In this document: positions 15,836 through 64,000 of the stretch, piece by piece
Layout: every line of letters begins with the position of its first letter
Position numbering within the stretch: the stretch's first letter is position 1
Assembly: GCA_964252035.1 (NCBI GenBank)
Contig: OZ176205.1
Direction: 5' to 3' (one strand)
DNA: 64,000 bases
Origin: Podarcis erhardii
Taxonomy: Eukaryota
Program-made: the position numbers and the translations under genes
The notes under the pieces: model-generated
Databases searched by the model: none
Seen by the model: only the letters and a program-made list of their open reading frames with translations
What the model was told of the DNA's origin: nothing

Positions 15836-18213
15836 TCATATTGAAAAGGGTTTTTTGTCTTTGAAGAGAACTAAGGAAGGATAAATGTTTTTTGAAATAT
15901 TTGCTTTGCTTTGTTCTGCCTGTGAAGGCAATTCTTTATCACAATCAGCAGATGTGGGAGACAATGTAGGTTTGGAGACAGAGATTTCGGTTTTATGTGT
16001 CTTGTAAGGAAGTGAAGGCATCTCAGTTTGTTCCTCATAACTGACGTCTTTAAGCTTTGATAACAAAGGATGCTCTTGACGTGTTGCTGGTGGCATTTTA
16101 CCTTCTTTATAATCACTGCTACCTTCATCAAGTTGATTGTTTGGAGCTTCTTGCAAATCACTCTCATTATCCATATGCACCTTATTGTTCATTTCAAGAT
16201 TGATGTTGCTCTCCAGATGTGTGTTTCCAGTTTCAGGGGAAGTGGGGACGTTTGATGTGTTAGAGATAATGGTCACTTTGACAACATTTTTATGAAACGT
16301 TTTGCATTTGTTATTCTCCCACTCATTCCCAGTTTGCACTCCTTCCTCTTTTAGGCCCGCTGAGACCATGAGTGTATCTGGGATAAACATTTTCGTTGAC
16401 TCACTGTTGCTTTCTGCTTTGAAATCTGCTCTCTGGTGCTGTGATTTTGTTCCATATACTTCCATGTCATTAGTTCTAGCTGGCATTTGAAGTTGTTTGG
16501 TGGTTATACACCCAGCGGCCTGAGATTTAGAAAGTGTGCTGCTGAACTGAACTGGAGATTTGAATCTATTTATGTCCTTTTCTGTCGGAATTTGGTGTCT
16601 ACTTGATGGTGGAATTTCACCAAAGCTATGGGACTCCACAGCAACTAGATTTCTTTGTGCAGATTCAGTCTCTATAGCCCTTTTGTGCCCTTCCAATCCA
16701 TCTTCCACTGTTAAGCTTTTATATTGTTGTTTTTGGAACTGCTTCGGATTCCTACCTTGCATTATATTCTCAGCAGTTTGCTGAAACTGCATATTATCAT
16801 CTTTGGTGGCATTTTGCAAATTGAGCCCTTCTCTTTCAATAAAGAGAGCTTGAGAAAGACTGTGGTCTTTTTCCTGTGCTGCCATCATCAAAGAACTCTG
16901 GTGAAAGGCCAGGACTGCAGTTTCTGTAATATCTTCACTAAGCTCTTTAGAATTCACTGGTGCTGGAATGTTATTTGCTTCATTCTGCAAAACACTCAGT
17001 GAATGGTTGGGTGAAACAGCAATAGCTGAAACAATCATCCTTGAAGTTCCATTTGGTGAGAATAGAGATGAGCTCCTGGTGCAACTTTGAGCTTGTAAAA
17101 GCTTGGTGGGTGAAGTACCCTCAGCAATTGTCATGTGAGAAACACTCTTAGAAGGACAAGAGATGACTGTAACACCATCTGTACCATTTTCTTCAGGCAG
17201 TTTCCCAACAGATTCTCTAGAATAAATAATATCTTTGCTGCACTCTGAGATCTTTTGGGCAGCCACAGAATATTCTGATTCTGATTTTGTTTTTGTTCTC
17301 CTTCTTCTGTCTTCCCTCATGGAAGCATGTGGCAATTTTGCCTGTCGACAACTTGGGCACTGTTCTTTGTTTTCTTTGGGGAGAAGCTCTTCAGGCTGGA
17401 TTCTTGCTTTTCTAAAAGGATGTAAATTTAACTTCACAGTTAGAGAATCCCGGCTTTTAGTTTTCATTTTATGCTTCTGGATGAATCCAATCAGTTTTTC
17501 CCCAGGTCCTGCAGAGGTGGGAGATGGTTTCCTTTCTTCATTTTTTGCTCTTGAATCACAGTGCAATCTCCTTCCCAGAGCAGGGGTGAGGTTTCCTTGA
17601 ATACTCTTGCCTTGTCCTTTGTTCTCTGGGGATCTCACCCCACTTAAGCCACTTGTCACATCCACCCTCTTTATTGTTGCCAGGTCAGGTACATAAAAGC
17701 TAACACTCTTGGGCTGATACATTCTCTTGATTGCTGGCGATAACGACATCTCTTCATCAGTCATACAGGAACTGCCTGCTCTTTTGCTCTTAACTTCACT
17801 CTGTCCTTCATCCAACTTCACATTTTTGCCATGGTTCTGTTTTGTTTCTGTCGGGTAGTTGCGATATTTATCACAGCCTATGTATTTACAGATAAGGAAG
17901 TTGTCTAGCTGCGGAGAAATATTTTTGCTCCTTTCTAACGATCCACATGGATCATCCTGTCGCCATCCATGGCTTCCTAATGTTGCTTCTTTCACGCAGT
18001 GGTCCTTGGATTCCTCTGGTGTGTCAGGTGCTGATGACGAGGCTGTAATAAAATGCCTTTGCCTCAGCCTGTAAGGCTTTAAGCAGTCCTCATCCTCCTC
18101 GGTTTTGGATACAGACAGACATGACTCATTTGCTAAATGTTTTCCAAGCCCTTCTTTTGCCAAAACACACGCAGCTCTTGAATGTCTTCCACAGAATGTG
18201 TCACTTCTGATTC
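15836..18213 (-). CDS. LRRC53: LRRC53 last coding exon: about 790-aa largely disordered cytoplasmic tail
   Basis: Acceptor tgtttcacAG at 18215-18214. 2378 nt to the stop at 15836. Motifs RQRHFITASSS, NFLICKY and KLNLHPFRK.R..PE match recalled LRRC53. The spliced CDS from ATG 32557 is 3807 nt (1268 aa). Confidence 0.94.
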
Positions 18214-19153
18214 CTGTGAAACAGCAAACGTTGAAACTTAGCACATGCAGAGGAGTTCTCTTACACTGGCTAAACAGATGTTTGGAACACCTACATCGGG
18301 GGTGCCAAAAAGAAGAGGGCTTCCCTGCTTATGGGAAAATGCAAAACAACTAGCTAATGTCTCAGGCTCAGCAAAACATTTTTGCGTTGCAAAGCAATGG
18401 CTAATGTATTCTTTTGGAGTGGCCATTTTTTAAAAAATGAACTGAATAATGACTGATATGAAGACAACTTTGTTCTTGTTCTCTGTATAGAACTATACAG
18501 TCAATCAGTCATGTATGCTTCTGCAAGATAATTCTGTCAACACCATAATTTCTAAATATCCGAATTGAAGCTCTTGTGTTGACTGTGCAATTATTTATTT
18601 AGCACTGTAATACTAACATTGAAACCACATTCTCTGATCTTCTCTGCTTCCCTTCCCCTCATTTCCCAGCCTTCCTCCTGCACAACTCTTTCTTTTGTTG
18701 CATTTCACTTGATGAAAGCCACTCTGCTATCCTTATATGCCCCCTCTTGCTCCCCTCGCTTCCCCGTTTCTGGTTACTATCTACCCTGCCCTTATCCAGC
18801 CTCTAGATTTTTTTCCCCTCCACCCTCCACCCTCCTTTCTGGTTCTTTTGCTGGTACAGTCAAACAAAACGCTTTCTCTCAAACTATTAGCCAATTTCCT
18901 TTCTGAACTCTTGGCTCATGCTGCTGACCCTCACCATTTCCACTTTTTCCCTATTCCTTTTGAACATTCCCGCACCCACCACTTCCAGGCAGGCTTCAAC
19001 CCTCTTCATTCCACTGAGCATGCCATCTTCACAATCACGATATTCTTGCTTCTCCCAAATGATCTCAGCTCAATCTTCTTCCTCTTTGACTTTACTGCTG
19101 CTTTTGATACAGCTGATCATTCTGCTTGGCTTGGCTTCTTTTTTTTGCCATAG

Positions 19154-25086: not shown

Positions 25087-25269
25087 GACTCTAGATGATA
25101 GCTAATACACAGGAGATCTTACTTAGGACAAGGTGTGGGATTGGCTGGTTATCAGGTTCTCCATGACTATGATTTCTTGATTATTTTTTCATAAAATGGT
25201 TTAAAAGAAGGAGGATCTCGGAATAGATCAGGTGACAAATATGCTGGCAAGGGGTGGGGGTGCCATTAC

Positions 25270-26076
25270 CTAGAAAGGAAAAAACAGCAACCAGTGCAAC
25301 ATCTCGTCCGTAGTTCCTCCTCCTGTTTTCTAAAATACCAGGAGGGTGTTTAAGTGCAGACTTACAGTTGACCTCCGTGAGCTCAAGCAGATTGGTCACT
25401 GATGGGTTTTCAGAAGCTCTGCAACTCACATTATCAGCGTTTCTGAGCATCCTTGATGAAGAATTGACGTATTTCCTTAGAAAGGAGGCTAGGTCGTGAA
25501 GTTTGCATGTGCAGTTCCATGAGTTCTGGTCTAAGCTTAGAAGACTTAATTGAGTGAGAGAGGAAAAGGTGTCAGGAATAATGGCTAGCCTGTTCCTTGA
25601 AAGGTCAATTTCCATCAGTTGGGCGAGGCCGTGGAAGGCTCTCTTTTCAATGGAGCTAATGAAATTGTTTGACAAATCTAGGATCCTGAGTTTGCCAAGC
25701 TTTGCCATCTCAAAGCTTTCCCCTGTGATGCTCATTAGTTGATTCCCATTTAAGTGGAGTCTAATAAGATCCTTTGTGCTCATAAACCAAATTCCACGAA
25801 TGCGGCTCAAAATGTTGTTGCTTAACACTAGCACTTGCAGCTTTTGAAGTTCATGAAATGTGCTGTACGTGATAGAAGAGCTTGATATTTGGTTCTGGTC
25901 CAGAAGTAAAGTCTTCAGGGTTCTAAGTCCAAGAAAAGCATCATCTCTAATGGTTGTAATCCCATTAGCGCTGAGTCTTAGTAAAGTTGCATTGAACAGG
26001 AAGGACAGGTTAAACCCTTCTACTGAAGTGATACTTCCATCAGTAACAATCAAAGCTTTTGTGGATGCAGGAACAG
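25270..26076 (-). CDS. LRRC53: LRRC53 exon encoding the LRR array, LRRCT cap (WNCTC..C..C) and first half of the transmembrane helix (DVALVAVFSFLG)
   Basis: Acceptor tttcgtatAG at 26078-26077 and donor GTaatg at 25269. 807 nt, phase 1 to 1. LxxLxLxxNxI repeats are visible in ORF-track 25181..26053. Confidence 0.96.
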
Positions 26077-57162: not shown

Positions 57163-59098
57163 CCATTCATGTTAAGGCATGTGCATGTGCTCTGATACTG
57201 GTGAGGTCTCTTTCTGTACAACAGCGCAAAGCCCTGTGTACATGTTAAGACATTCAAATGGAGCTGCATCGTGCATAAGTGCTATTTTTGAGGCAGCTAG
57301 CCACACCACTGAAATAACGCATGTAGCATGCATGCCTGAGGAATTGTGATGACGTCTTCCAATGGCTTAGCTCCCTGTGGAAAGTTCCACTTGTACAGGG
57401 GAGACTGCCTGCCCCCTTCCCTTGAAAGAGCAGAAGTGCAAGGAGCCAAGTCCACGGAAAAGGCAATGGAATCGATGCTGCAGCATGTCATTACATACAG
57501 CAACAACAAATAATACTTTGCTCTTAGACATGTTGCAGCTCCTCTAAACAGGAGCTCAGTTAACATGAAAAGCAAAGTGGGCTGCGCCCTCTGTGCCTGG
57601 GTGCAGAACTAATCCCAGTGTAAATGAACATTTGATATTTATATTTTGAAAGGATGTAGAAAAGACCCGGTCAAAACATACACACCTTTCTATTGGAACA
57701 CATGTGTCTAGCCTTGCTTAAACACCAAAAAAAAAAAAAAAAACCCAAAACCCCACACAAATGACACATCAAAGGCAGCAAGGGGGGTGGGGGTTTGAAT
57801 GGATATAATCACAATATGTACAGTTCTCATCAGTTTTTTCAGGCGTTTTATTATTCTACATAAAGCCCTCATTGTGGCTCTCACTATCACCACAGTTAAC
57901 TGGCTGATTTTTGTGAAGTTCCCAGCAACATAATAATTTTCTGCTTTTTTAAAAGAAATGTGTGGCAGCTGTTGGACAGGCCTCATGATTATTACTTTCA
58001 TAATTATAAAGGAGTGTTATTTCTGAAATGGGCTAGATAGGCTTATTTCTCTAGTCTGGAGCTGTTCTGGTTAAAAAGCAGCAGATGTTTATGCTACTCA
58101 TGAAGGAAAAGAAAGAAAAAGGAGGGAAGACACCCCAGCCAGCACCAGCCTAGAGTGATTTGTGGAAAAGTTGCTAAATAATCATAATCGTAATATGACT
58201 AATGGAAAAGGGAAAATGGAAGCTGTGGAATAATTGGAGAGAATGCTTGGTTGGGTGAGTCATTGTTTCCACCTTGCCTTGGGACTGTAGTGATGACACA
58301 GTGGGACTGTCAAACCCCAGAGTACTCTAAGGAAGCAAAAAAGGAAAAGAAAGTTAGCTGTATAGGGTGCAGATTACAAGTTTGACGTAACAAGGACTAG
58401 CAATTCTAATCTGCTACTTTGGAAAGTTGTTTGTTTTCTGTGCATTAGGACATCTCTTAAGATATTGTAAAGAAATTTTGGTTCCTGGAGTCAAAGAGAA
58501 GGTGTCTCACTGTTTGTGTGCCATTTTCCTCTGTTTGCATACCATTTTGAATCAAAATGTCAGAATGAACCTTTCAAAACTGGCCTGGCCTTTTGGTTGC
58601 AGTTGATCCTCGGAGCTATTAAAGCAGTGCTTTACTCTACCAAGGACCTTTCAAAGATGTTTGCATATTCTTTCTCAACTTCCTTATCCCCCAAACACTA
58701 GCCCACTAGCTGGGGATGACTCCGGAAGGTGAGAGCCATTTTGGAATAAGTGCAACCCCACCCACACAGCTAAGAATGATGAAATAGTGCAAGCAAGATC
58801 TATGTGTGAGGTAGAAAAAAACAAAGCTGTCAGTTTGAAAAACAGACAGAGAGAGCTGAGCTGAGTTTTGAGCTCTGCAAGGCAAAAGCATCTGGGATGC
58901 AGGAATGCCTTGCTCTGATGGGACTGCAGTGGGCATTCTCTGTTAAAATGTTTATGTTATCTTCCTCCACTAGTATATCTGTAACACAACAAAACAAAAC
59001 AAAATGCCAAAGAAAGGCCTCTCCAGCAATCTCATCTGCTAAAGAAAACCAAACTTGGCTATCTGCCACCACCAGCCTCTGCTTAGAAGAGTGGTATA

Positions 59099-59737
59099 CA
59101 GTGGTACCTCTGGTTGCAGGCGGAATCTGTTCCAGATCCTGAGGTTTTTGCTACTGGAGGTGTCTGTTCTGCACATGCGCGCAGTGCGGTAAAGCGCTTC
59201 TGCGCATAAGCGTGCAGCGAAACCCAGAAAAATACTTCCAGGTTTGCCGCATGTGTATCCCATGTTAGAATTCTGCTCCATGATTGCAGTCATGGGATTG
59301 TTGTCTATCACATGATGGTGTATGTTTTGACTCCACAGTGGGAAGTGACAGAAACAGGATGTTTGTGTTACTGTGTTCCATGAAGTGGGACTATTGTCCT
59401 TTGTTCTCTCTCTTTGCTGTCTGATGCTAGAGAGAGAGGGAGCCATGTTGCAGTGCTCCGTGTGTGTTTAGATTAGCCAAAATGCTGAGTTGCTGAGGTC
59501 TGTTATGCAAGCTGTGAAGATTCTGTGGATCCCTAAGTGTGCAGGTGTCAGTTGGCATCGGTCGCTGTGATGTTCGGGCAAAAGAAAGCTTTTGAAGCTC
59601 CTGAACAAACAACCAGGAGGGAGAGAACATGCCAGTCAGGCATGTGTCTCTGCCAGGGTCCTACTCGAGTGTAGGACAAGCTCCTGACATCCCAAAGGAT
59701 ACGTAACCAGAGGTGTGTGTAAGTAGAGGTACCAATG
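59099..59737. mobile_element. Tigger/pogo-type MITE (TA TSD) interrupted by a solo LTR
   Basis: TA|CAGTGGTACCTC at 59097-59110 and GAGGTACCAATG|TA ending 59737-59739; palindromic interior. Confidence 0.82.
59263..59689. mobile_element. Solo LTR, 427 bp, TG..CA ends, perfect 5-bp TSD TCCCA
   Basis: Starts TGTTAG and ends CTGACA. TCCCA at 59258-59262 and 59690-59694. The superfamily cannot be determined from the LTR alone. Confidence 0.85.
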
Positions 59738-60226
59738 TACAAGCAACAGCTCCTATCAGGTCTACCATTCAGTATTTTCATGATCTAAAGGAACTGGGTT
59801 GAATCGTTTAGAAAACTGTGTAAAAAATATATTTCCCAAGTTGCCATTTTAGCCTGCTACACATAGGCCCATAAAATGGTCTGAAGGAAAACTGAGCAGT
59901 TCTACTGCAGCCATTAAGCAGTCTGGCCCCATAAGCTGTCCTGAAGGGAGCCCCCAGCCCAAACGATATGCAAACAGCTCCAAATTCCTCCAAGGAGATG
60001 GAGGTCTGTGTGATATTTTATTATTATTTTAAAAAACCAGCCATGTAAAGTCAAATCAAGCACCTTTAAACTCCTATTGATTTGTAACAAGTAAATGAGT
60101 AAGTGCATGTTCAACTCTCCCCAGTGAAATTAGTGTCAAGAAAGGTGGAACTTTAGCTGGCTCATGCACTCTGCTCCAGAGCTATAGCTATGGAGGCAAC
60201 GAAGTAAGGTGAGTTTCAAAGACAGG

Positions 60227-60291
<65 letters not shown>

Positions 60292-60292
60292 T
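60227..60292. repeat. (TTA)n microsatellite, about 21 units
   Basis: Read directly. Confidence 0.97.
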
Positions 60293-60409
60293 CCTGTGGA
60301 TGAGTGTTTGCCATTCAAAGGAGAAAAGTCACACAAACACATACATGTATGGCTAATTGGCTAATGCAAACACTTAGGCAGGCCTAAAGCAACTCTTTGG
60401 ATTGGGGCC

Positions 60410-60411
<2 letters not shown>

Positions 60412-60447
<36 letters not shown>
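60412..60447. repeat. (CT)n microsatellite abutting the ERICH3 3'-UTR splice donor
   Basis: Read directly. Confidence 0.97.
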
Positions 60448-60450
<3 letters not shown>

Positions 60451-60451
60451 C
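60445..60451 (-). other. Consensus 5' splice donor (AAG|GTAAGA) 23 nt after the ERICH3 stop codon: 3'-UTR intron
   Basis: The minus strand reads TAA (60476-60474), 23 nt, then GAAG|GTAAGAGAGAG, with the exon ending at 60451. Confidence 0.65.
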
Positions 60452-60473
60452 TTCATTCCTAGTCCCCTTCTTC

Positions 60474-63400
60474 TTAGTCAGATGTTCGAGAAGATTCTAG
60501 GCTGATCATTTGCAATGTGAAGTTTACTGGCGGCTGTCCTTCAGGCTGTTGTGCATTGCTGGGAACAATTTCTTTCACCGGCAGATTTTCTTCTGGAGAC
60601 TCTTCCTCTCCTGTTCTCCTCTGTTCGTTTCTATATTTTTCCTCCACAGGCTCTTCAGTACCTGCTTCCATGGCTTTGTCGCTCTGAGCACCCCATGTTT
60701 TTCTTTTTACTACAGCTGCAAAAACTTCTTTCCTCCCAGCCTCCTCCTTGTGAGACAGCATTTGAGTCTCTTCTACTGAAACTTCCCCCTCAAGTTCTTT
60801 AGGCTCTTCTTCCTCTTCCTCCTCCACTTCTTCGCTCATAAACGATACTTGTTCTATCAACTTCTGCATCCCTGCCAACAGAGCTTCCTCCACATCTCGC
60901 AGCGTTATCATTGGTTCTCCTGTGTAATATGCCTCCTCTTCCTTCTCTACTTCATCGCTTGCATCTTCTACCTGCACCTCCAGGTCAGGTGACATTTTCC
61001 CGGCCACAGTCTCTTTTGGTGTTTTTTCCACTTCATCTTGGAAGCTGACTTTACTGCCCATTCCTCCTTCTGCTAATGCTGCTTTTTGTGTGAATGGCTC
61101 GGATAGGTGTGATGCCTCTGTCACGCCAGCTATCCTTGGGGTTCCTGTGATGGTCATCCCATGGGCTATTTCATTCTCATGTGCCATGGACAGAGACCCC
61201 CTTTCTCTCTCTTTCCCTGAAACTTCAGCCTCTGTCCTCCTTCTAATTGCCACCTTTCTCCCTGCCTTTGTCTCTTCAAAATCCACTTCTCCTTCTCCTT
61301 CTGCCCCTGTCTTCCTTCTTCCTACTCTTTGTTTCTGTTTAGGTGCTGCCACTCCAGATCCCAGAATCACTTCTGTCCCTCCCTCTTCAACTTCCTCACC
61401 CTCCTCTTCAATTAGATCCTCTTCCTCCACTGCACCTTCTGCACTGGCCACCACACCTTCAAGTGTTGCTCTTCTTCCAGCCCTTCTTTCTGAACTTGTC
61501 TTGACACCTGACCTCTCTGCCTTTCGTATTACTCTTGCTTCCTGGGCTGTCGTATGTTCATCTTCTGCTGCTGAAATGACCCCCTCAGCGTCGCTCTCTG
61601 ACAAGGGTTTGCCCACCTCAGATTCCAGTTTCTGTCCAGCTGAACCTTCATCTCTAGATATTCTTTTCTTCTCTTGTTGATACATTTTCCTTCCAGACCT
61701 TCTTTCTGAACTTGGCTTGACCACTGACCTATCTGCCTTTCGTATTGTTCTTGCTTCCTGGGGTGTTGTATCTTCATCTTCTGCTCCTGAAATGACCTCC
61801 TCAGCCTCACTCTCTGATAAGGGTTCACCTTCCCGAGGTTCTAGTTCCTCTTGAGCTGAACCTTCGTCTCTAGATATTCTTTTCTTCTTTCTCACTTCTA
61901 CGTGTGTTTTCCTTCCAGCCTTTCTTTCTGAACTTGGCTTGACTGCTGACCTCTCTGTCTTTCGTATTATTCTTGCTTCCTGGGCTGTCGTATCCTCATC
62001 TTCTGCTCCTGAAACGACTCCCTCAGCCTCACTCTCCGACAAGGGTTCACCTTCCCAAGGTTCTAGTTCCTCTTGAGCTGAACCTTCATCTCTAGATATT
62101 CTTTTCTTCTTTCCCACTTCTACGTGTTTTTTCCTTCCAGCCTTTCTTTCTGAACTCGGCTTCACTGCTGACCTCTCTGTCTTTCGTATTATTCTTGCTT
62201 CCTGGGCTGTCGTATCCTCATCTTCTGCTCCTGAAACGACTCCCTCAGCCTCACTCTCCGACAAGGGTTCACCTTCCCAAGGTTCTAGTTCCTCTTGAGC
62301 TGAACCTTCATCTCTAGATATTCTTTTCTTCTCTCTCACTTCTAAGTGTGGTTTTCTTCCAGCCCTTCTTTCTGAACTCGGCTTGACTGCTGACCTCTCT
62401 GCCTTTCGTATTACTCTTGCTTCCTGGGCTGTCGTATCTTCATCTTCTGCTCCAGAAATGGCCTCCTCAGCCTCAATGTCCGACAAGGGTTCATCCACCT
62501 CAGATTCCAGTTTCTGTCCAGCTGCACCTTCGTCTCTAGATATTCTTTTCTTCTCTTGTTGATACATTTTCTTTCCAGACCTTCTTTCTGAACTTGGCTT
62601 GACTGCTGACCTATCTGCCTTTCGTATTGTTCTTGCTTCCTGGGCTGTCGTATACTCATCTTCTGCTGCTGAAACAACTGCCTCACCCTCAGTGTCCAAC
62701 AAGGGTTCACTTTCCAAAGGTTCTGGTTCCTCTTGAGCTGAATCTTCATCTCTAGATATTCTTTTCTTCTTTCTCACTTCTACGTGTGTTTTCCTTCCAG
62801 CCCTTCTTTCTGAACTCGGCTTGACTGCTGACCTCTCTGCCTTTCGTATAGTTCTTGCTTCCTGGGCTGTCATGTCTTCATCTTCTGCTCCTGAAATGAC
62901 CCCCTCAGCCTCACTCTCTGTCAAGGGTTCACCTTCCCAAGGTTCTAGTTCCTCTTTAGCTGAACCTTCATCTCTAGATATTCTTTTTCTCTCTCTCACT
63001 TCTAAGTGTGTTTTCCTTCCAGCCCTTCTTTCTGAACTCGGCTTGACTGCTGACCTCTCTGCCTTTCGTATAGTTCTTGCTTCCTGGGCTGTCATGTCTT
63101 CATCTTCTGCTCCTGAAATGACCCCCTCAGCCTCACTCTCTGTCAAGGGTTCACCTTCCCAAGGTTCTAGTTCCTCTTGAGCTGAACCTTCATCTCTAGA
63201 TATTCTTTTCTTCTCTCTCACTTCTAAGTGTGGTTTTCTTCCAGCCCTTCTTTCTGAACTTGGCTTGACCGCTGACCTATCTGCCTTTCGTATTACTCTT
63301 GCTTCCTGGGCTGTCGTATCTTCATCTTCTGCTCCTGAAATGACCCCCTCAGCCTCACTCTCTGATAAGGATTCACCTTCCCAAGGTTCTAGTTCCTCTT

Positions 63401-64000
63401 GAGCTGAACCTTCGTCTCTAGATATTCTTTTCTTCTCTCTCACTTCTACGTGTGTTTTCCTTCCAGCCCTTCTTTCTGAACTCGGCTTGACTGCTGACCT
63501 CTCTGCCTTTCGTATAGTTCTTGCTTCCTGGGCTGTCATGTCTTCATCTTCTGCTCCTGAAATGACCCCCTCAGCCTCACTCTCTGTCAAGGTTTCACCT
63601 TCCCAAGGTTCTAGTTCCTCTTGAGCTGAACCTTCATCTCTAGATATTCTTTTTCTCTCTCTCACTTCTAAGTGTGTTTTCCTTCCAGCCCTTCTTTCTG
63701 AACTTGGCTTCACTGCTGACCTCCCCGCCTGTCGTATTACTTTTGCTCCCTGGCCTCTCATTTCTTCATCTTCTGCTGCTGAAACGACCCCCTCAGCCTC
63801 ACTTTCCGAAAATGGTTCACCCACCCGAGGTGCTAGTTTCTGTTGAGCTGAACCTTCGTCTCTAGACATTCTTTTCTTCTGTTTCACTTCTAGAGATGTT
63901 TTTTTGGTCTCACCCCCCCACAGGCCTGAAATGTCTTGGACTATTTCCTCCATTTCAGATGAAACTCCTTGTCTGACACCTTTGCTGCCATATACTAGGG
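60474..64000 (-). CDS. ERICH3: Large Glu-rich exon, 5'-incomplete (frame open to the window edge; possible acceptor cctAG at 63996-63995), probably the big C-terminal coding exon of ERICH3
   Basis: ORF-track 60474..63953 gives 1159 aa, E/K/R/S-rich, with no in-frame stop between 63953 and 64000 and a TAA at 60476-60474. The gene name rests on the known amniote order TNNI3K(+), LRRC53(-), ERICH3(-) and on composition, not on direct motif recognition. Confidence 0.75.
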   Translation of the reverse strand, partial: LVYGSKGVRQGVSSEMEEIVQDISGLWGGETKKTSLEVKQKKRMSRDEGSAQQKLAPRVGEPFSESEAEGVVSAAEDEEMRGQGAKVIRQAGRSAVKPSSERRAGRKTHLEVRERKRISRDEGSAQEELEPWEGETLTESEAEGVISGAEDEDMTAQEARTIRKAERSAVKPSSERRAGRKTHVEVREKKRISRDEGSAQEELEPWEGESLSESEAEGVISGAEDEDTTAQEARVIRKADRSAVKPSSERRAGRKPHLEVREKKRISRDEGSAQEELEPWEGEPLTESEAEGVISGAEDEDMTAQEARTIRKAERSAVKPSSERRAGRKTHLEVRERKRISRDEGSAKEELEPWEGEPLTESEAEGVISGAEDEDMTAQEARTIRKAERSAVKPSSERRAGRKTHVEVRKKKRISRDEDSAQEEPEPLESEPLLDTEGEAVVSAAEDEYTTAQEARTIRKADRSAVKPSSERRSGKKMYQQEKKRISRDEGAAGQKLESEVDEPLSDIEAEEAISGAEDEDTTAQEARVIRKAERSAVKPSSERRAGRKPHLEVREKKRISRDEGSAQEELEPWEGEPLSESEAEGVVSGAEDEDTTAQEARIIRKTERSAVKPSSERKAGRKKHVEVGKKKRISRDEGSAQEELEPWEGEPLSESEAEGVVSGAEDEDTTAQEARIIRKTERSAVKPSSERKAGRKTHVEVRKKKRISRDEGSAQEELEPREGEPLSESEAEEVISGAEDEDTTPQEARTIRKADRSVVKPSSERRSGRKMYQQEKKRISRDEGSAGQKLESEVGKPLSESDAEGVISAAEDEHTTAQEARVIRKAERSGVKTSSERRAGRRATLEGVVASAEGAVEEEDLIEEEGEEVEEGGTEVILGSGVAAPKQKQRVGRRKTGAEGEGEVDFEETKAGRKVAIRRRTEAEVSGKERERGSLSMAHENEIAHGMTITGTPRIAGVTEASHLSEPFTQKAALAEGGMGSKVSFQDEVEKTPKETVAGKMSPDLEVQVEDASDEVEKEEEAYYTGEPMITLRDVEEALLAGMQKLIEQVSFMSEEVEEEEEEEPKELEGEVSVEETQMLSHKEEAGRKEVFAAVVKRKTWGAQSDKAMEAGTEEPVEEKYRNEQRRTGEEESPEENLPVKEIVPSNAQQPEGQPPVNFTLQMISLESSRTSD
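61465..63900 (-). repeat. Coding tandem repeat: 11 copies of a 222-nt (74-aa) unit, with two 216-nt variant junctions
   Basis: The SRDE motif occurs 11 times in the ORF. TCTAGATA recurs at 62751 and 62973 (period 222). Unit: KRISRDEGSAQEELEPWEGEPLTESEAEGVISGAEDEDMTAQEARTIRKAERSAVKPSSERRAGRKTHLEVRER. Confidence 0.97.

Follow-up and report, generated by a model that had tools for sequence, protein, structure and literature searches.

A tandem charge-block array in the terminal exon of lacertid ERICH3, probably a tolerated coding minisatellite

In a stretch of 64,000 nucleotides from the lizard Podarcis erhardii (assembly GCA_964252035.1, contig OZ176205.1; hereafter the window), a long minus-strand reading frame contains eleven head-to-tail copies of a highly charged segment. 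The original prediction placed this array in ERICH3, a little-understood protein associated with cilia and vesicles, and read it as a lineage-specific spacer that phosphorylation might switch. The locus thus raises the question of whether such an array is a charge-block scaffold under selection or a repeat expansion that the protein tolerates.

The minus-strand frame is open from 63998 to a stop codon at 60474–60476, where Podarcis proteins end at the same C terminus, and its 1174 translated codons represent the in-window part (60474–63998) of a large terminal coding exon that is open to the window edge and extends past position 64000. Tandem Repeats Finder reports a single array at 61474–63892 (11.0 copies of period 222 with 88% matches and 0% indels, at a score of 3592), which, together with the open translation of 803–807 residues, bears out the eleven-copy, 74-residue array that had been proposed. 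We set the unit register to start at the Ser following each K-K-R-I junction, so that the units span 63866 down to 61437 and the array itself, in a phase differing from that of Tandem Repeats Finder, occupies 61458–63866 (≈803 residues). The coding frame of the array is free of stops, and each of the other five frames contains 10 to 67 of them. No copies of the unit were found outside the array within the 64-kb window.

Nine of the eleven units are 74 residues long: units 1 (63645–63866), 2 (63423–63644), 3 (63201–63422), 4 (62979–63200), 5 (62757–62978), 7 (62319–62540), 8 (62097–62318), 9 (61875–62096), and 11 (61437–61658), the last seven residues of which (61437–61457) are already ancestral 3′ flank. 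Units 6 (62541–62756) and 10 (61659–61874) have 72 residues owing to an identical 6-bp deletion, and the unit 6 subtype also occurs in P. muralis and P. raffonei. Derived features are common to units 6 and 10 as well as to units 7 and 11, the latter two belonging to a subtype with an altered acidic start. Units 2, 4, and 5 are mutually 98–99% identical in DNA with a dS of about 0, which marks them as a recent duplication, and units 8 and 9 are 98% identical. Because units 2, 4, and 5 are so similar, collapse or expansion of the array in the assembly of the source animal is possible. We also considered a clean higher-order repeat and rejected it for the window, where mean identity is about equal at lags of one to four units; the P. 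muralis array does have a clear four-unit period.

By homology, the array-bearing gene is ERICH3. Residues 850–1174 of the translation match Zootoca ERICH3 with an E value of 4e-144, and the non-repeat, acidic C-terminal tail of 327 residues (60477–61457) shows a graded similarity to squamate ERICH3, with identities of 97–98% in Podarcis, 83% in Zootoca, and 43% in Rhineura. The predicted gene identity is further upheld by the annotated proteins that this tail matches, which carry PF15257 (DUF4590); the window ends before the upstream exons of ERICH3, and the evidence for PF15257 comes from the orthologues, where it is present in every one with the same last exon, including the gene models at four other lacertid loci. 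The homologous exon of four further lacertid genomes has an open frame of 1404–1864 codons. A Pfam-A scan of the exon product gave nothing above the gathering threshold and three chance sub-threshold matches (E values of 0.03–0.4). A minus-strand exon encoding LRR_8 is located at 25181–26053; in the human gene order, LRRC53 adjoins ERICH3 on the same strand. Separately, the 120 matches listed included an ERICH3-like protein of 1553 residues from a JGI contig of 6961 bp; this may be mammalian cDNA-like material and entered the batch scans of all matches only.

Every lacertid ERICH3 examined contains the array; the Podarcis-type genomes have 11, 11, 12, and 12 units, and the Zootoca genome has 19. 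A profile of the unit searched against 1.84 billion protein representatives matched the lacertid ERICH3 cluster only, and word-index searches with the tail and the array separately returned only lacertid ERICH3 among up to 8000 candidates within a length band; the absence of the unit elsewhere is argued from the exhaustive profile search, not from the word-index searches by themselves. Rhineura ERICH3 contains one colinear copy of the segment, weaker single copies occur in Varanus, Tiliqua, and geckos, and a profile of this proto-unit picks up snakes and anoles; beyond squamates, the segment is undetectable. Both flanks of the array are colinear with the single-copy orthologues. The pre-array flank (63867–63998, 44 residues) ends with the basic junction in its ancestral form and can be aligned with the Rhineura and Zootoca sequence immediately preceding the proto-unit, and unit 11 shows colinearity with the single copy and tail of Rhineura. 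The non-human mammalian ERICH3 orthologues examined have no periodicity. The array is thus lineage specific, as had been proposed, being tandem in lacertids only and single-copy in other squamates, and comparison of the unit with squamates and beyond placed it neither in all amniote orthologues nor in a known family. The array would have arisen by tandem amplification, in the ancestry of lacertid lizards, of a segment of 222 bp that other squamates have only once.

In a tree of the units, the first units of lacertids form a supported clade, the last units of all lacertids, unit 11 among them, cluster together, and the interior units of Zootoca form one clade. Judged from this tree, the edge units, including the diverged unit 1 (dN/dS of 0.4–0.5), are old and orthologous between genera, and the interior units turn over. 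In-frame head-to-tail units, copy-number change, a homogenised interior, and diverged edges together characterise a coding minisatellite, and the later evolution of the array would be driven by unequal exchange, with edge units persisting and interior units being gained, lost, and homogenised.

The substitutions within the array allow the form of selection to be described. All six independent indels are multiples of three, in agreement with the claim that indels preserve the frame. Across 180 substitution events, none of the 9.9 expected stops was realised, and the number of synonymous changes (44 versus 45.6 expected) corresponds to the neutral proportion. Charge-changing replacements are mildly depleted (P = 0.026), and the dN/dS of the array is no lower than that of the flanking tail, where values range from 0.25 to 0.8. 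This pattern shows selection that keeps the frame open and weakly keeps charge, with particular residues apparently not constrained, although such neutral-looking turnover of residues would be compatible with function in a redundant array. We considered stronger constraint on the consensus unit and rejected it: the divergence of ≈7% between the genus consensuses equals the expectation from the rate of the tail, because a consensus approximates the ancestor.

These data also bear on whether the array is present in the mature protein at all, since it could instead be an artefact of assembly, a segment that is retained or can be removed (exitron), or a noncoding satellite that is open by chance. 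RNA coverage is very thin, consisting of a handful of RNA-seq reads from a close relative over the tail and units 10 and 11 (unit 10 being partly covered), but all of them are in the orientation of a minus-strand transcript, and these reads and a 1125-nt contig, starting at the stop codon, reach into unit 11 with no intervening joint. One further run, X1, was set aside from the RNA support, its RNA nature not being demonstrable. Older assemblies disagree in unit number, with 11 versus 19 units in Zootoca, which is a mere hint of within-species polymorphism, and a broken unit in older P. muralis models; nevertheless, the array is open over 2.4–4.1 kb in five independent genomes, and the 21 gene models examined, isoforms and older models together, all keep the whole of it. 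The significant absence of stops and frameshifts and the colinear flanks described above likewise argue against a segment outside the protein, a reading that we regard as very improbable. We infer that the array is translated in vivo.

We then asked what such a sequence would contribute to the protein. The alternation of an acidic and a basic half that had been described is evident in the net charge of the unit, which is −12.5 over columns 1–41 and +9.2 over columns 42–74. These half-unit charges are conserved in Podarcis and Zootoca, with the basic half at about +9.5 in both, and this basic half is new in lacertids, its charge having changed from −2 to +9. Over the array as a whole, the fraction of charged residues (FCR) is 0.44 and the net charge per residue (NCPR) is −0.045. 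The charge-patterning parameter kappa, proposed as a check, lies well above that of shuffled sequences (0.265 versus 0.148, z = 7.6), and the SCD of the unit gives a z of −6.6. AlphaFold assigns the array a pLDDT of 47.5 and a pTM of 0.12. With opposite charges segregated, a net charge near zero, and this low pLDDT, the array is predicted to be a disordered block polyampholyte, as originally suggested.

Several short motifs recur along the array. The K-K/R-K-R-I-S motif was recovered as a junction motif, [KR][KR][KR]-[IM]-S, with 10 occurrences inside the array and a similar one preceding unit 1, and each of the 10 junctions matches a basophilic (PKA-type) consensus, with basic residues at positions −2 and −3 of a Ser, and is a putative phosphorylation site. 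The acidic-context Ser/Thr residues were likewise confirmed by count, with 69 S/T-x-x-D/E sites in the array, or about six per unit. The proposed phosphorylation switch is a prediction from these motif matches. In the tail, the KVSF tetrapeptide is located at 61041–61052 as predicted, but its reading as an RVxF motif did not hold among orthologues: we rejected it as a PP1 dock, KVSF being conserved in Podarcis only, with HVTF in Zootoca and no counterpart in other squamates. The sole aromatic motif of the unit, E-P-W, stands in an acidic context, and its conservation extends to the single-copy ancestor in several squamates. The motif is similar to the D-P-W motifs through which endocytic proteins bind adaptors. 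In human cells, ERICH3 coprecipitates with AP2 and clathrin (PMC8141066).

Could the array then be an adaptive, multivalent scaffold whose charge blocks are tuned by phosphorylation to drive condensation or the binding of polyanions, for instance tubulin tails, within cilia or sperm flagella? The charge segregation described above and the mild depletion of charge-changing replacements are in keeping with this idea, and selection for charge blocks could explain why the derived basic half was gained and then kept in two genera. In the Ki-67 repeat domain and NPM1, phase behaviour is governed by charge blockiness that phosphorylation tunes (PMC9106583), and ERICH3 is linked to cilia by mammalian work, in which it localises to cilia and proteomes of airway cilia contain it in abundance (PMC6848114). 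Of the 11–12 units in Podarcis-type genomes, 9–10 have the junction motif, as do 18 of 19 units in Zootoca, but this conservation is confounded by recent homogenisation of the units. Moreover, the ratio of synonymous to replacement changes is neutral, dN/dS does not fall below that of the flanking tail, copy number varies from 11 to 19 between genera, and different, net-acidic units have expanded in the same tail of other lineages, which points to a permissive region over specific design. We consider such a scaffold unlikely. A more specific version, in which a selected diblock scaffold is tuned by phosphorylation of Ser in the basic block and alters ERICH3 in cilia or flagella, and in which the recurrent tail expansions reflect selection on length or valency, appears less likely still, and a role of the array in the sperm flagellum is speculation.

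The reading that we favour, and regard as probable, is that this part of the terminal ERICH3 exon is a lacertid coding minisatellite whose product serves as a tolerated, length-variable disordered linker. Its expansion would have inserted about 800 residues of nearly neutral, disordered diblock polyampholyte between the DUF4590-bearing part of the protein and the conserved C-terminal tail, and any effect would arise from properties of the array in bulk, for example its length, charge blocks, or multivalency, rather than from a folded or residue-specific site. The array most likely acts as a flexible linker of variable length. Because the substitutions show selection on the open frame and weakly on charge, not on residues, tolerated expansion is at least as good an explanation of the data as a spacer by design.

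On present evidence, the lacertid array offers a neat example of repeat evolution and involves no new mechanism. It does provide a natural experiment in which ≈800–1360 residues of block polyampholyte have been added at a defined point and close relatives remain single-copy, a system that could test whether ciliary localisation or motility depends on the length of the ERICH3 tail and the blockiness of its charge. Because the length of ERICH3 varies from about 1300 to 2600 residues, annotation and orthology pipelines should treat the gene with caution.

The tail of ERICH3 is a hotspot of coding-repeat evolution in which unrelated repeats have grown independently in many tetrapod lineages. Tandem arrays are found in ERICH3 of snakes (30-residue units), the skink Tiliqua (15), geckos (17, 34, 54, and 68), and the frogs Xenopus (68 and 110), Pelobates (16), Spea (13), and Ascaphus (11). 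Like the lacertid array, these are tandem repeats of charged, low-complexity sequence within the disordered tail of the same gene, the shared C-terminal location being established for the squamates inspected. Their units are unrelated to the lacertid unit and, in the squamates inspected, lie downstream of the proto-unit; they are also net acidic (NCPR of −0.06 to −0.38) and, in squamates, shorter, whereas the lacertid array has an NCPR of about −0.05 with a true basic block and, at 800–1360 residues, is the largest of those compared. Because other repeats grew in the tail of snakes, skink, geckos, and frogs, the lacertid array is, by this comparison, one case of a recurrent expansion process.

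Alternating charge blocks in a disordered region are a functional property of the Ki-67 repeat domain and NPM1 (PMC9106583), which resemble the lacertid array as disordered charge-block polyampholytes with many Ser/Thr sites able to change blockiness. The lacertid unit has no sequence relationship to them (no Pfam match, and lacertid ERICH3 only in the exhaustive profile search) and, unlike them, is already a diblock without phosphorylation; it also belongs to a cytoplasmic or ciliary protein, whereas the Ki-67 system is chromosomal. The closer likeness in architecture is to coding minisatellites (in-frame VNTRs), with which the array shares head-to-tail units, concerted evolution, diverged edges, copy-number differences between close species, and a maintained frame. 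Compared with a typical coding minisatellite, the lacertid unit is long (222 bp) and derives from single-copy coding sequence of its own exon.

The array runs along the minus strand at 61474-63892, where Tandem Repeats Finder reports a single array with a period of 222, 11.0 copies, 88% matches, and 0 indels; there is no N anywhere in the window. The frame that carries it is open from the window edge at 63998 to a stop at 60474-60476, and across the array we counted 0 stops in the coding frame and 10-67 in each of the other five. We delimited units at the Ser following each K-K-R-I junction, which gave eleven units from 63866 down to 61437, numbered from the N-terminal end. Nine of the eleven are 74 aa long, and units 6 and 10, at 72 aa, share one 6-bp deletion. 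The coding strand is strongly purine-skewed, as fits its Glu, Lys, Arg, and Gly codons. Tandem Repeats Finder and the open frame thus confirm the eleven-copy array of the original prediction, and cutting and comparing the units showed its account of the unit, the junction motif, and the in-frame indels to be accurate; the KVSF motif that it placed at 61041-61052 is correctly positioned.

The 325 non-repeat C-terminal residues (the tail) match glutamate-rich protein 3 (ERICH3) of Zootoca vivipara, a protein carrying PF15257/DUF4590, with an E value of 4e-144 and 83% identity. The window tail also shares 96.6-97.8% identity with the ERICH3 proteins of Podarcis muralis, P. raffonei, and a third Podarcis-like genome and matches none of them exactly, which marks the source of the window as closely related to them. 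This agreement with annotated orthologues supports the proposed assignment to ERICH3, whose DUF4590 exons lie past the window end, the gene being on the minus strand. With the N-terminal 420 residues of Zootoca ERICH3 as query, we found 597 ERICH3 orthologues across vertebrates, 120 of which were listed. The Platysternon megacephalum protein P0021 is a clear orthologue (PF15257, E 1e-186) that bears the source name "membrane primary amine oxidase-like", probably a mis-annotation. P0117, which is ERICH3-like and 1553 aa long, belongs to a JGI record whose longest contig measures only 6961 bp; this points to mammalian material in an environmental data set that is cDNA-like and lacks introns. P0117 entered the analysis through scans run on all hits, and the non-human mammalian ERICH3 proteins of the list solely through the periodicity and profile scans. 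Downstream of ERICH3 on the same strand are a leucine-rich-repeat exon at 25181-26053 (a 290-aa open frame with five LRR_8 stretches) and, at 15836-18244, an 802-aa open frame with no Pfam match. Both probably belong to a neighboring LRRC53 gene, LRRC53 being, we assume, the human neighbor of ERICH3. Two perfect microsatellites, (TTA)x20.7 at 60230-60291 and (TC)x17.5 at 60413-60447, follow the ERICH3 stop codon at a distance of less than 250 nt and would presumably fall in the 3′ UTR.

All 21 models examined for the other four genomes, gene-model isoforms and older models together, contain the whole array and vary upstream of it only. Reads from a close relative (≈1.4% divergent; two stranded bulk RNA-seq runs) were mapped to 59000-61880. 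A handful fell at 60940-61230 and 61522-61880, every one with a plus-strand first mate, which in most stranded libraries denotes RNA of the minus strand. A small, putatively RNA run supplied a contig of 1125 nt that spans 60461-61537 with no joint. Together, these data give a thin but positive indication that the tail is co-transcribed with the last units. No RNA reads fell between 59776 and 60454, at a depth insufficient to place the end of the transcript. Just downstream of ERICH3, at 59190-59690, a dispersed repeat has very high RNA and contig depth on both strands, most reads fitting only in part and leaving their ends unmatched, which is what a multicopy SINE-like or transposon-derived element would produce.

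Substitutions were scored against the unit consensus, with a transition-weighted random model as the null. Synonymous changes made up 44 of 180 distinct events (45.6 expected), whereas of ≈9.9 nonsense events expected none was realized (P ≈ 4e-5 for none); one scored nonsense event lies in a doubly changed codon and was not counted as realized. All six independent indels across five genomes (+6, +6, −48, −9, −6, and −6 nt) are multiples of three. The frame is defended, and it is highly improbable that the array is an artefact or non-coding. Frame defense could simply serve to retain the conserved tail. There is a mild deficit of charge-changing replacements (53/135 versus 48% expected, P = 0.026), pooled pN/pS among window units is 0.69, and orthologous dN/dS lies at 0.4-0.9 in edge units and at 0.25-0.8 in the tail. 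Defense of bulk charge is weak and single residues are nearly free to change, a pattern that, with the kept frame, fits a disordered region.

The alternation of acidic and basic halves originally described is real: in the window units, columns 1-41 carry −12.5 and columns 42-74 +9.2, compared with −12.6/+9.4 over all 46 Podarcis-type units and −12.2/+9.6 over all 19 Zootoca units. The single copy in the amphisbaenian Rhineura has −7/−2, which places the origin of the basic block on the lacertid branch. Across the array, the fraction of charged residues is 0.44 and the net charge per residue −0.045, with a kappa of 0.265 against 0.148 ± 0.015 in shuffles (z 7.6); sequence charge decoration of one unit is −4.0 (z −6.6). 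An AlphaFold model of three units from an 11-row alignment (mean pLDDT 47.5, pTM 0.12, 0 residues reaching 70) has helices only in the basic half and at low confidence, a prediction consistent with a disordered array. The sole aromatic residue of the unit lies in an E-P-W in the acidic half (e.g., 63591-63611, unit 2). The form [DEG]-[PS]-W is kept in the single-copy segments of Rhineura (protein P0006, ≈1093-1102), Varanus, Tiliqua, and Sphaerodactylus, and E-P-W is lost in lacertid edge unit 1 and in Elgaria. As a motif, it recalls D-P-W adaptor-binding motifs and may serve as a lead.

A profile of the eleven window units, run over the 120 listed orthologues, found full arrays in lacertids only, one copy in Rhineura (48 bits), and weak single copies in Varanus, Tiliqua, and Sphaerodactylus. 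The Rhineura segment is colinear with the pre-array flank plus unit 1 and likewise with unit 11 plus the tail start, which indicates one copy between the same flanks. A profile of this single-copy counterpart, the proto-unit, detected lacertids, Rhineura, Varanus, a skink, geckos, Elgaria, snakes, and, weakly, anoles, and no turtle, crocodilian, bird, mammal, or amphibian among the ERICH3 orthologues scanned. A word-index search with the array gave only six lacertid proteins among the matches listed, and the single match of an exhaustive profile search of 1.84 billion protein representatives was the lacertid ERICH3 cluster. These searches support the lineage specificity first claimed. The array is already in public gene models, and we found no paper describing it or tying ERICH3 to tandem repeats or lizards.

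We compared the window with ERICH3 loci fetched from Zootoca, P. raffonei, P. muralis, and the third Podarcis-like genome, in all four of which the last exon is one open frame (1404-1864 codons; arrays of 2391-4071 nt). There are 11 units in the window and the third Podarcis-like genome, and 12 each in P. muralis and P. raffonei. Zootoca has 19 in the newer assembly versus 11 in the older model: P0001 and P0002/P0130 with locus L001 stand eight units apart, in two gaps (288 and 294 residues), reflecting either assembly collapse in the older genome or real copy-number polymorphism. We built a tree from 65 units together with the Rhineura copy; in it, first units group together irrespective of genome, and so do last units. 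The 17 interior Zootoca units form one clade, and Podarcis-type interior units comprise a few subtypes that recur across species, together with recent duplicates peculiar to single species (in the window, the trio 2, 4, and 5 and the pair 8 and 9). Paralogue dS within the window is 0-0.32 (median 0.20) and window-Zootoca orthologue dS 0.08-0.20; because the paralogue maximum exceeds the orthologue values, the first duplications are older than the Podarcis-Zootoca split. Derived features are common to units 6/10 and to units 7/11, and the clear four-unit period of P. muralis is blurred in the window by recent duplicates. Turnover is ongoing, and its pattern is typical of unequal exchange between tandem units, a process that would enlarge, shrink, and homogenize the interior while the edge units stay old.

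A self-similarity scan of 121 ERICH3 sequences (the 120 listed plus the window) revealed tandem arrays in 31. Unit lengths are 72-74 aa in lacertids, 30 aa in three snake species, 15 aa in Tiliqua, 17/34/54/68 aa in geckos, 68 aa in Xenopus tropicalis, 110 aa in X. laevis, 16 aa in Pelobates, 13 aa in Spea, 11 aa in Ascaphus, about 62 aa in Rhinatrema, and, weakly, about 22 aa in some turtles and birds; the non-human mammalian orthologues examined had none. The snake, skink, gecko, frog, and caecilian arrays (P0010, P0033, P0069, P0012, P0015, P0016, P0018, P0034, P0059, P0081, P0084, P0097, P0109, and P0102) lie in the C-terminal region, with periods of 11-110 aa unrelated to the lacertid unit. 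Other squamate arrays are downstream of the proto-unit and unrelated to it. Arrays outside the lacertids have a net negative charge (NCPR −0.06 to −0.38); that of lacertids is nearly neutral. The ERICH3 tail is a recurrent site of coding-repeat growth, and the lacertid array is the largest and only diblock-neutral case among those scanned.

Human ERICH3 is located in primary cilia and influences how cilia form, and proteomes of airway motile cilia contain it in abundance (PMC6848114). It is vesicle-associated in neuronal cells, where clathrin heavy chain, AP2A2, and PIK3C2A co-precipitate with it; the region responsible is encoded by exons 1-12 and lies outside the large last exon (PMC8141066). 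We think it likely that the array is a lacertid-specific coding minisatellite, kept for frame and roughly for charge, not residue by residue, that would add a disordered, diblock-polyampholyte linker to ERICH3. The nearest functional analogy for such a tandem charge-block region is with the Ki-67 repeat domain and NPM1, to which a Pfam scan and the exhaustive profile search found no sequence relationship. In those proteins, phosphorylation raises or lowers charge blockiness and hence phase separation (PMC9106583). The phospho-switchable scaffold of the original prediction is argued from motifs, and we consider it doubtful. The lacertid unit is a diblock already, with four Ser/Thr in its basic block, and by analogy their phosphorylation would weaken its blockiness, as in NPM1.
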